64,000 nt of DNA from Lepidodermella squamata (GCA_047495785.1 JBLDXI010000013.1:2914001-2978000), one strand, 5' to 3'; shown: positions 32,537-38,838, counted from the stretch's first letter. Numbers and translations are program-made. The notes: generated from the sequence alone by a model not told the origin.

Positions 32537-32932
32537 AAAAACAGGCTCCAAGTGGTTGATATTTTTTGATAAATTCGACAACCACTTGGGAGCCGTTCGA
32601 TTTGGGCCCTCGGGGCAACATGTCCAACCCTTGGCGCTCGGGGGAGAGCGATAGCAGGGCTGCTGCGGACATGCTGAACCACCGGGTGGTTGAGGGCGGG
32701 AGACTGAGGCCTTGAAAGGTTCAGCCGAATTCAGCGAAGTAAGCATGAATTTTCGAAGTAAGCTACATTTTGCGCCAGGATCGAAGGCTGAACCAATCCG
32801 TTACCCACGGGTTACCATGGGACGGATCGGGAGCCTCCGACGGTGTACAGACACCACCTGGCGTCGGCCGAAACAACAGCGTTGGAACTGCTGCTTTAGC
32901 GCTTGACGACATGTGTTGATGTGTCAGACTCC
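32537..32932 (-). ncRNA. Structured ~396-nt Pol III-type ncRNA candidate (possibly 7SK-like)
   Basis: TATATAAA about 30 nt upstream, 5' GGA start, many helices whose G-U wobbles work only on the minus strand, and a terminal hairpin followed by TTTTT. No credible ORF. Confidence 0.6.
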
Positions 32933-32958
32933 GAAAGAAAAGAGGCAAAAACGCCACG

Positions 32959-32966
32959 TTTATATA
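32959..32966 (-). promoter_or_regulatory. TATA box of the candidate ncRNA
   Basis: TATATAAA on the minus strand, followed by a pyrimidine-rich spacer and then GGAG. Confidence 0.5.
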
Positions 32967-36776: not shown

Positions 36777-36910
36777 AAAACACTCTTTATGATTCGCATG
36801 ATAATTAAAACCAGTAGACTAAAATATATAGCTTTTATTGCACGTCGTTTCGAAATCAGTCACAATTTCATCATCAGGTGAAATGAGTTGGCATGTAAAC
36901 GGAGTTTTTC

Positions 36911-37165
36911 AGAAAATATAAGTCATAGGAATAGATATAATTCAGTAATTTCAATGTGGTTTTTAGATATAACGCCCACGAGAAATGGATGCCAAGGGCC
37001 CCAAATGGCCTAATGATTCATCAGCGGCTTAGTGGCCTCAAATTTCCGAAATTTGCGCCACTAAGCCGTTGATAAATCATTAGGCCATTTGGGGCCCTTG
37101 GCATCCCTTTTCTCGCGAGCAGGCGATCTTTAGTGAATTATATCAATACATATGACTTATTTTCT
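36911..37165. mobile_element. Foldback/MITE-like nested inverted repeat
   Basis: Inner near-perfect palindrome 36979-37115 (ggatgccaagggccccaaatggcctaatgatt...aatcattaggccatttggggcccttggcatcc). Outer imperfect inverted repeats ataagtcata...gatataattca and tgaattatatc...tatgacttat. Confidence 0.7.
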
Positions 37166-37766
37166 ATGAGATAAGTAGACCATTAAAGGTGGATATTTCC
37201 AACATCAGGTGTGAAGTTCAGCAATGACTCAAGAACTCCTCATTCAAAACAAAGCTGCAATAAGCTTGCTTTTCGTCATTCTCAGCGTCGAAATACTAGT
37301 AGAACTCATGGTAGAACTAGCACAAACCAGCATTCCGCCATTGCTACATATCAACGCTTTGAATAGACACTTGAGGGAACTGGATATCGCTGACTTGTAC
37401 GCAGCCAGTGTCGAATCCAACGCATGGTTCTTTCGAAAAACTGCCGTATACTCTAACTGCACAACAGCCAAACCGTAAAATGTCTGAAAGCCGAAAGAAA
37501 AGTATCACGCAGTTCTTTTGAATATGAGGTTTCTCGAGATCGCGCTTTCTCGGCATCGGTTGCAGTGCCAGTCAATCGCATAGAAGAATGGCATAGGCAT
37601 CATCGATGTTTCGGAGAGACACGAGAGAGAAATTGTAATTGTTGATCTTTTAACAAGACCAGTTCAGCGAGTCAAAATTATTGCTTAACTAATAGCTCAT
37701 TCAGTTTTCGCCCAGGCGGTGAGTTACTGAATGAACATCCGAAGTAAGCAAATATTTTGGAGGGCG

Positions 37767-37839
37767 ATTCCTACGGAGGATTCGAACCTCCCACTGTGTT
37801 CAACGATGAACACCGCTCTACCAACTGAGCTAGTAGGAA
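37767..37839 (-). ncRNA. tRNA-like cloverleaf with non-canonical anticodon arm (not a standard tRNA)
   Basis: TTCCTAC-TA-GCTC-AGTTGGTA-GAGC-G-GTGTT-CATCGTTG-AACAC-AGTG-GGAGG-TTCGAAT-CCTCC-GTAGGAA. All four stems pair perfectly and the A and B boxes are intact, but the anticodon loop has 8 nt and no U33. Confidence 0.8.
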
Positions 37840-38256
37840 AATGGCTGCTAAGCAGCAAATTCACGTCACAGTGAAAATTGCTAGCCTGAGCAGCAAAGAA
37901 TGAGAAAAAATGAGCGTATTTATACGGCCTTAGGCTCACCTATAAATAATTCAGACGACTGATGCAATTTTATTCAAAAGGTTGCTTAGTGCGGAGGTGA
38001 GGATTCATTATCAATTCAACGTTAAAAAATGAAACGTCAATACTGAATAACTAAGAAGATCAACCTATTGTTCTCAGTGTGAAAAGAAAAGAAAGAAAAA
38101 ATTCAATAAATAACAATGCCAAATCCAAGTCAGCAAAAGATGATTCCATTCCGTCCTGTTCTCACTTAATTTTTTGAATAACAGTTCAAGCTCAAATTAA
38201 TAATAGGTACCTTATATTGCAATTAGTCGCTTTGAGGCATTATTAGACATCTTGAA

Positions 38257-38838
38257 ATGGCGAACCCACCGTGGAATGCCCTGGCTGGAAAATGGCAGGC
38301 TGATCGCAGTGAGAATTACGATGAATATCTGAAAGCGATGGGTACGAGATTTTAAAATTTCATAATAAATATTCTGTACTGTTATAATTGAAATCAGGGG
38401 CTCCTCCTTTTATCATTAAAATGGTTACATCGTCAAAGTCCGCCCTGGAAATTTTAGTCGAAGGAGAACAAATCATAATTCCGAATTCGTCTTCGGTATC
38501 GCAGCAAGGCAATGAAATCTTTATTGGTATAAATAAATTATTTGTGTTATTTATCGATTTATTCATTAACTGATTTTAGTAAATGGCCCCGAAACTGAAG
38601 CTAGCTTGAACGAGAAACCAGCTAAAGCTCGCTCGGTTTGGCAGGATGGAAAATTGATCATCGACATTTCATCGCAATCCGATTCGCAAAAACTTACGCG
38701 AGAAATTCGCGGTGACGAGCTTGTTCAGGTTTGTATATAATTTCTTATATAATTCGCGAATAAATTATTCATATTATGTAGACAATGGAACTAAATTCTG
38801 GCGTCAAATGCGTGCGATATTTCAAACGAGCGGCGTGA
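38257..38838 (+). CDS. Fatty acid-binding protein (FABP/iLBP); exons 38257-38341, 38398-38526, 38580-38728, 38782-38838
   Basis: LAGKWQADRSENYDEYLKAMG N-terminal signature, TREIRGDELVQTM and CVRYFKR. Three introns, as is typical of FABP genes. Confidence 0.9.

Follow-up and report, generated by a model that had tools for sequence, protein, structure and literature searches.

The window analysed here is a stretch of 64,000 nucleotides from Lepidodermella squamata (positions 2,914,001-2,978,000 of contig 13), and its genes include those for a soluble guanylate cyclase, a cytochrome P450 and a TRP channel. The heme-binding motif of the P450 is found at about 36529 on the plus strand, and the P450 gene ends, in coordinates, well 5' of the tRNA-like locus that is our subject. 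On the far side of this locus, also on the plus strand, there is a probable FABP-like gene with a probable three-exon start (38257-38740); its first exon, from 38257, looks like the N-terminus of a fatty-acid-binding protein (FABP), and the Pfam match is weak (E = 0.07). The TRP channel gene follows beyond the FABP-like gene on the minus strand. The tRNA-like locus itself is intergenic, within a stretch of about 1 kb, and stands head to head with the FABP-like gene. A spurious open reading frame of 71 amino acids runs across it and returned no record on look-up.

With regard to the neighbours, the closest homologue of the P450 is 47% identical, and the contigs concerned are non-syntenic and carry no tRNA. 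The closest homologues of the TRP channel (58-64% identical) all lie on one 18.5-kb ENA contig. Just 3' of the P450 we also observed a nested inverted repeat (36909-37169), in which 54-nt arms with 94% complementarity lie inside 40-nt arms with 83% complementarity, together forming a hairpin of about 260 nt. It may represent a MITE-like element or a hairpin-RNA locus, or else a palindrome produced artificially by the MDA-based assembly.

Fold, anticodon loop and copy number of the cloverleaf

The core of the locus is a tRNA-like cloverleaf of 73 nt, including a discriminator U, at 37839-37767 on the minus strand. Its acceptor stem (7 bp, TTCCTAC/GTAGGAA), D stem (4 bp, GCTC/GAGC), anticodon stem (5 bp, GTGTT/AACAC) and T stem (5 bp, GGAGG/CCTCC) are 100% Watson-Crick, with all 21 canonical pairs (42 stem nucleotides) intact. 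It carries U8, A9, A14, G18-G19, A21 and G26, the T loop reads TTCGAAT with canonical T54-Psi55-C56 and A58, and position 48 is a G that faces G15. The stem lengths of 7, 4, 5 and 5 bp and the conserved nucleotides of the D and T loops are those of a canonical decoding tRNA. On the same strand, the A box (TAGCTCAGTTGG, 37832-37821) agrees with the type-2 consensus for Pol III, and the B box (GGTTCGAATCC, 37788-37778) agrees with it perfectly. Fully paired stems and intact A and B boxes had already been described in an earlier note on this DNA, and all of them are present. When the 73 nt were folded alone, the minimum free energy (MFE) structure was the cloverleaf itself (-30.5 kcal/mol, z = -4.6), and none of 200 shuffled sequences did as well. 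In longer contexts of 177 and 251 nt the thermodynamic fold favours other pairings for the D and T regions, as is common among tRNAs.

The anticodon loop (CAUCGUUG) consists of 8 nt and has an A in place of U33 and a U in place of the purine at position 37; the earlier note had reported both features, together with the G at position 48, and the sequence agrees. In the MFE fold the outer bases of the loop pair with each other (C-G and A-U), so that the stem of the anticodon arm (37813-37796, minus strand) extends to 7 bp and leaves a UCGU tetraloop at 37806-37803. Two such extra pairs would be expected in a random 8-nt loop with a chance of about 6-14%. As judged by its sequence, this loop probably makes the decoding of codons impossible. 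ARAGORN called the cloverleaf tRNA-??? with an 'anticodon' of 2 bases, in line with the pseudo or undetermined call that the earlier note had anticipated. Scanning the whole window against Rfam gave no match at the gathering score; the top score for the cloverleaf within the tRNA clan was that of tRNA-Sec (21.5 bits, with a cut-off of 47), and ordinary tRNA genes from the same genome scored 72-75 bits. Two marks of a canonical decoding tRNA are lacking here: a 7-nt loop that has U33 and a purine at position 37, and a score at the Rfam gathering level.

The earlier note had also named a base-call error that restores a 7-nt loop as a finding that would count against its interpretation. Deletion of any single base in the 8-nt loop fails to restore a canonical loop, no homopolymer in the loop is longer than 2 nt, and the published L. 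squamata assembly was built from PacBio HiFi reads (PMC11660948). Given such an assembly and the lack of longer homopolymers, a base-call error in the loop is unlikely, and no correction of one base would yield a canonical loop.

The copy number was determined in the whole genome assembly (121.2 Mb, 151 contigs). Stretches of 86, 251 and 501 nt around the cloverleaf each matched only themselves, even at E <= 10. Exhaustive pattern searches of the 121 Mb detected no other sequence with the 19-nt T arm at up to 2 mismatches, and none with the 25-nt 3' half or the 27-nt 5' half at up to 3 mismatches. Paralogues with an anticodon arm closed by CA....TG were sought among the tRNA-like sequences of the genome, and none was found. 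The genome-wide count proposed in the earlier note thus gave a single copy, and the high-copy, SINE-like distribution with decayed stems that it had listed as contrary evidence was not seen.

For comparison with real tRNA genes, we used a set of about 155 distinct genes from fetched loci, covering about 32 anticodon families out of a larger total. The closest of these sampled genes was Ile-AAT, which is identical at 55 of 73 positions, mostly the universally conserved ones, and the families with TCG or CGT anticodons are quite unlike the cloverleaf in sequence. The D-arm string, allowing 1 mismatch, occurs 521 times in the genome, and the copies listed and fetched were Phe and Tyr genes. Among the tRNA genes there is also an intron-containing tRNA-Tyr(GTA) gene of 86 nt, which ARAGORN labels 'tRNA-Asp(gtc)' and whose D arm differs from that of the cloverleaf by 1 base. 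The genome is very rich in tRNA genes, most of which are arranged in tandem multi-gene cassettes; the cloverleaf stands alone, outside the cassettes. Metagenomes were searched for relatives with a pattern validated on the window, and no match was obtained. The 21-nt string of T arm and acceptor stem is absent from the bacterial, archaeal and viral collections, on which ground we rejected horizontal transfer or contamination as its origin.

By these sequence comparisons the cloverleaf is an orphan that is present in a single copy. Being single-copy and having no near relative, it is neither a SINE nor a recent pseudogene copy: the many dispersed copies of a tRNA-derived SINE are missing, and the sampled genes include no closely similar parent family of the kind that a recent tRNA pseudogene would have in its genome.

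Upstream hairpin, 3' tail and terminators

Upstream of the cloverleaf on the minus strand there is a hairpin of 51 nt (37844-37894), with about 20 bp and a 6-nt loop, and further upstream a TATA-type box (TATAAATA, 37917-37924), whose first T lies exactly 30 nt 5' of the first G of the hairpin. These two elements had been pointed out in the earlier note, as had pairings in the tail and the TTTT at 37677-37674, and all are found in the sequence. Comparable TATA spacings occur elsewhere in the genome, at about -29 in U6 genes and about -31 in candidate vault RNAs. A TATA-type hexamer would fall within 3 nt of a given point with a chance of about 0.3-0.5%, a figure that has to be read with the fact that the anchor point was picked post hoc here. 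The hairpin folds with an MFE of -24.9 kcal/mol (z = -4.3, none of 200 shuffled sequences as good), and its raw MFE places it in the top 0.08% of the 54-nt windows within the 64-kb window. Values of z <= -4 are found in 0.3-0.9% of random windows here, and in 0.3% of random 54-nt windows. It should be underlined that the z-scores of both the upstream hairpin and the tail overstate the significance, as the windows were framed after the hairpins had been seen.

Between the hairpin and the cloverleaf lies a T4 run (37838-37841, minus strand), which overlaps nucleotides 1-2 of the acceptor stem and is a potential Pol III terminator. This run is absent from the earlier note. Only 9 of 164 sampled tRNA genes have a TTTT within -15 to +3 of the tRNA start. 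T4 is the first downstream T-run in 23% of the sampled tRNA genes, and T5 in 56%. Judging from its sequence and position, the T4 at 37841-37838 would tend to halt Pol III arriving from the upstream hairpin. We therefore hold the hairpin apart from the unit of the cloverleaf; it more likely represents a separate small TATA-driven Pol III unit that ends at this T4, or part of a Pol II transcript. The earlier note's description of the cloverleaf as embedded in a longer structured RNA accordingly holds at best for the 3' tail, from which no T4 separates it, but not for the upstream hairpin, from which a T4 does.

Genes for U6 were found at least 30 times in the genome, on contigs C3, C12, C29, C32 and C33. 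Their upstream regions have two features in common, a TATTTAA box near -29 and, between about -77 and -45, a strongly conserved element with a ATGCAAAT core; the element is missing from one copy. A shared snRNA-type promoter for the tRNA-like locus was considered and rejected: by eye there is a reversed near-octamer upstream, the U6 element and its spacing are absent, and the distance from TATA box to start is the one feature in agreement.

The 3' tail (37674-37766, minus strand) begins at the predicted RNase Z site, is 93 nt long and ends with the first T4 (37677-37674). This T4 is located 89 nt downstream of the cloverleaf, whereas the first T4 after the sampled tRNA genes (n = 155) has a median distance of 6 nt and lies within 15 nt in 94% of them, which bears out the earlier observation that no T-run follows the cloverleaf directly. 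The layout is that of a dicistronic unit, in that an A/B-box promoter is followed by a structured downstream RNA with no T4 in between. The T-rich sequence TATTTGCTT, 12-20 nt downstream of the cloverleaf, could stop Pol III weakly, in a non-canonical way (compare PMC3141230). About 5% of the ordinary tRNA genes in this genome have distant terminators as well. The tRNA-His genes in cassettes on contig C1 always have a conserved 38-nt trailer before a T7, and some dispersed copies of tRNA-Thr(CGT) have 78-88 nt before the first T4. Since these genes have distant terminators too, the displaced terminator is in itself weak evidence, and long Pol III trailers may be more widespread in the genome.

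Most of the tail is taken up by a long, interrupted hairpin (37750-37682, minus strand), which begins 16 nt past the cloverleaf and has an inner 11-bp stem (37736-37726 / 37705-37695) and a 6x4 internal loop. The tail as a whole gave z = -4.0 and its hairpin z = -4.4 to -4.7 in two computations, with the same post hoc framing as above. The CGCCC/GGGCG pairing that the earlier note had proposed as a possible pseudoknot found no support, being 5 nt long only and in competition with local pairings. No Rfam family matched the tail at E <= 10, and 11-mers of both hairpins are absent from the supplements of the published L. squamata miRNA/piRNA paper. Inspection by eye revealed no convincing snoRNA boxes (C/D or H/ACA) and no convincing target-site duplications, and to read AAUUUUGA at the 3' end as a U7-like element or Sm site was equally unconvincing.

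A neighbouring candidate structured RNA was observed at 32537-32966 on the minus strand; as at the tRNA-like locus, a T-rich stretch comes after a box, which here is TATATAAA. A 29-nt motif of the tail (37731-37759, minus strand) recurs in this RNA at 32745-32772. The 10-nt core of the motif, GCTTACTTCG, occurs twice in the neighbouring RNA on the same strand, and a gapped pattern derived from this core was found genome-wide only in the tail and in the neighbouring RNA. The alignment score of the motif, 26, lies between the 95th and the 99th percentile of shuffles. The link that this motif suggests between the two RNAs is weak.

Interpretation of the tRNA-like locus

The explanation that we tentatively prefer, rating it a little short of even, is that the locus is a single-copy, lineage-specific Pol III gene of tRNA origin, in which the cloverleaf would act as a promoter and as an RNase P/Z processing module, yielding a non-decoding tRNA-shaped RNA and a trailer RNA of about 90 nt. 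TFIIIC would bind the consensus A and B boxes, and Pol III would start a few nucleotides 5' of 37839 and, as no T4 follows the cloverleaf, run to the T4 at 37677-37674, giving a primary transcript of about 170-180 nt. The acceptor stem, T arm and elbow would be recognised by RNase P and RNase Z, by which the 73-nt cloverleaf would be cut out, probably with subsequent addition of CCA. With its anticodon arm shut as a 7-bp stem and tetraloop, the excised molecule would read no codon. The 3' trailer, a long hairpin ending in U's, would be freed as a second product. The cloverleaf would thus be both promoter and processing cassette, and its RNA might itself be a stable small product. The boxes and the fold can be read directly from the DNA, and it is from these that we infer the subsequent steps.

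Among the evidence for this explanation is the retention of all 21 pairs in an orphan sequence, which points to a constraint on structure and not on decoding, as in tRNA mimics; the closed loop, the T4 displaced to 89 nt and the folding of both flanks speak for it as well. The elements that serve Pol III and TFIIIC (A and B boxes) and those that serve RNase P and RNase Z (acceptor stem, T arm and the G18-G19/C56 elbow) have been kept. It weighs against the explanation that the locus is a single instance, which offers no covariation. The earlier note had suggested an internal promoter or a processing signal for RNase P/Z of the mascRNA type; the boxes, acceptor stem, T arm, elbow and closed anticodon arm would all fit such a module and, with the published precedents, lend it partial support, but a dead tRNA gene remains as a rival to it.

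In this main rival, which we judge unlikely yet well worth weighing, a tRNA gene that once worked, dispersed and present in a single copy, would have been put out of action by one insertion and a few substitutions in its anticodon loop, and the hairpins and the distant T4 would be incidental. A genome this rich in tRNA genes may well throw up rare patterns, which a reader in search of oddities will pick out, and neither the distant terminator (likewise present at about 5% of real tRNA genes) nor the closure of the loop by two pairs (a chance of about 6-14%) is exceptional when taken singly; moreover, the comparison covered about 32 anticodon families out of a larger total. The existing families with TCG and CGT anticodons are, however, quite different in sequence, and the distribution of the changes is difficult to explain. 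At least 3 separate changes would all have fallen within the 7-nt loop, and none in the 42 stem nucleotides or the conserved nucleotides of the D and T loops, for which the chance under uniform hits is about (7/73)^3. If the gene died long ago, so that its family resemblance has been lost, its stems should have decayed as well; neutral decay is thus hard to reconcile with stems and conserved loop nucleotides that have escaped all hits in a sequence whose orphan state implies age. Had its loss been recent, a terminator should lie close by, as in 94% of real genes, and the independent changes would still have to be confined to the loop.

A DNA element would also suit the B box, which agrees perfectly with the consensus, and the position of the locus in about 1 kb of intergenic DNA, head to head with a probable FABP-like gene from 38257 onwards. 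In this view TFIIIC would bind a site of the tDNA type that insulates the P450 from the divergent FABP-like gene or marks a boundary between them, and any RNA would be irrelevant. A boundary requires the boxes only, however, and leaves the 21 intact pairs and the structured flanks unexplained; we consider this very improbable. Even less credence is given to a tRNA that works in translation, either as a decoder with an 8-nt loop of the frameshift or quadruplet type or as an ordinary tRNA misread through an assembly indel. Its cloverleaf, elbow and internal promoter are flawless, and frameshift suppressor tRNAs with 8-nt loops are known. Against it stand the missing U33 and purine 37, the failure of the Rfam tRNA models and a loop that favours helix closure; the HiFi assembly, the lack of a homopolymer in the loop and the fact that removal of any one base leaves it non-canonical all speak against an indel. 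Just as hard to credit is an origin from mobile DNA, whether as what is left of a tRNA-derived SINE or some other repeat, or as the primer tRNA of a retroelement. A tRNA head, a body and a T/A-rich end do make up a SINE-like layout, and by eye there is a loose likeness (about 11 of 14 positions) between the sequence just 5' of the cloverleaf and that with which the tail ends, but the locus is strictly single-copy at 86, 251 and 501 nt even at E <= 10, and the pattern searches gave no near matches. No family of sites complementary to the 3' end was found; there were 2 stray matches at 2 mismatches, leaving aside the locus's own opposite strand, against 1 in the control, and the primer function was rejected.

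A more far-reaching reading of the locus would be a cassette of three modules (hairpin, tRNA-like core, hairpin), in which the core provides the Pol III promoter and the RNase P/Z cuts that free one or two hairpin RNAs as Drosha-independent precursors of small RNAs. We regard such a cassette as improbable. If true, it would be a natural animal counterpart of the tRNA-like-miRNA units of gammaherpesviruses and of engineered guide arrays spaced by tRNAs.

Comparison with known systems

Three candidate vault RNAs were found in the genome, at C1:3090126-3090243 (34.1 bits with the Rfam Vault model), C1:3089466-3089581 (25.6 bits) and C9:2889845-2889975 (34.0 bits); the gathering score is 34, and the candidate with 25.6 bits falls below it. 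Each has a panhandle of its 5' and 3' ends, GGTTACTTCG, a B box, a T-run and a TATA box at about -31, and a gene for the major vault protein (MVP) is present at C21:305481-306390. To our knowledge, vault RNAs have been little described outside deuterostomes. Like the locus studied here, vault RNAs are small Pol III RNAs that combine tRNA-like A and B boxes with a TATA box further upstream, and their GGTTACTTCG resembles the GCTTACTTCG of the tail, but the order of the elements is different. A covariance model built from the three candidates matched neither the tail nor the neighbouring RNA at E <= 10, and the Rfam Vault model did not match them either. On the strength of the former result a vault-RNA relative was rejected.

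With regard to the arrangement of the unit, the closest parallels are dicistronic. In plant tRNA-snoRNA units and in the tRNA-like-miRNA units of murine gammaherpesvirus 68, read-through by Pol III delivers a second RNA (PMC3141230). A type-2 internal promoter, no strong terminator behind it and a structured downstream RNA to be released by tRNase Z are common to these units and to our locus (PMC3141230), which is, in contrast, a cellular locus of an animal. The tail hairpin, starting 16 nt past the cloverleaf and interrupted by its 6x4 internal loop, would make a poor pre-miRNA compared with that of the virus, and the C/D and H/ACA boxes of the plant units were not seen by eye. In human tRNA genes, too, the terminator can be far away and the long 3' trailer possibly constitutes a separate RNA (PMC3141230). 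The read-through layout is the same; those tRNAs decode, however, and the cloverleaf would not.

In terms of structure, the tRNA-like RNA of Arabidopsis GUT15 has a non-canonical anticodon stem-loop, is stable, enters tRNA maturation and receives CCA (PMC6152437). The cloverleaf shares the non-canonical anticodon stem-loop. The A box of GUT15 is defective, and this RNA is located in an intron of a Pol II transcript and has no autonomous Pol III transcription, whereas the boxes of the cloverleaf agree with the consensus and its locus is intergenic.

A longer anticodon stem with a compact loop has also been reported for mascRNA and menRNA (from MALAT1 and MEN-beta, respectively), which are cut by RNase P and RNase Z and are non-decoding (PMC11693755). 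The cloverleaf resembles them in this arm as well as in its acceptor stem, T arm and elbow guanosines (PMC11693755). It differs by having a full-size D arm, linker nucleotides and consensus A and B boxes; with these boxes and the full D arm it could drive its own Pol III transcription, unlike mascRNA. The latter has a reduced D arm and is found at the 3' terminus of a long Pol II transcript that contains a triple-helix element. No such long RNA is evident at the cloverleaf, where just the 51-nt hairpin lies on the 5' side and no A-rich tract is found by the RNase P site. It is furthermore an invertebrate locus without sequence similarity to mascRNA, and its cleavage by RNase P/Z and its CCA are predicted.

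If unexpressed, the locus would be merely an unusually tidy dead tRNA gene. If expressed and processed, it would show the conversion of a tRNA gene into a promoter-plus-processing cassette for another small RNA. It would then represent a cellular tRNA mimic of an invertebrate that has given up decoding while keeping the complete architecture of a tRNA and a Pol III promoter of its own, intermediate between ordinary tRNA genes on one side and, on the other, mascRNA and GUT15, which are reduced mimics carried by Pol II transcripts.
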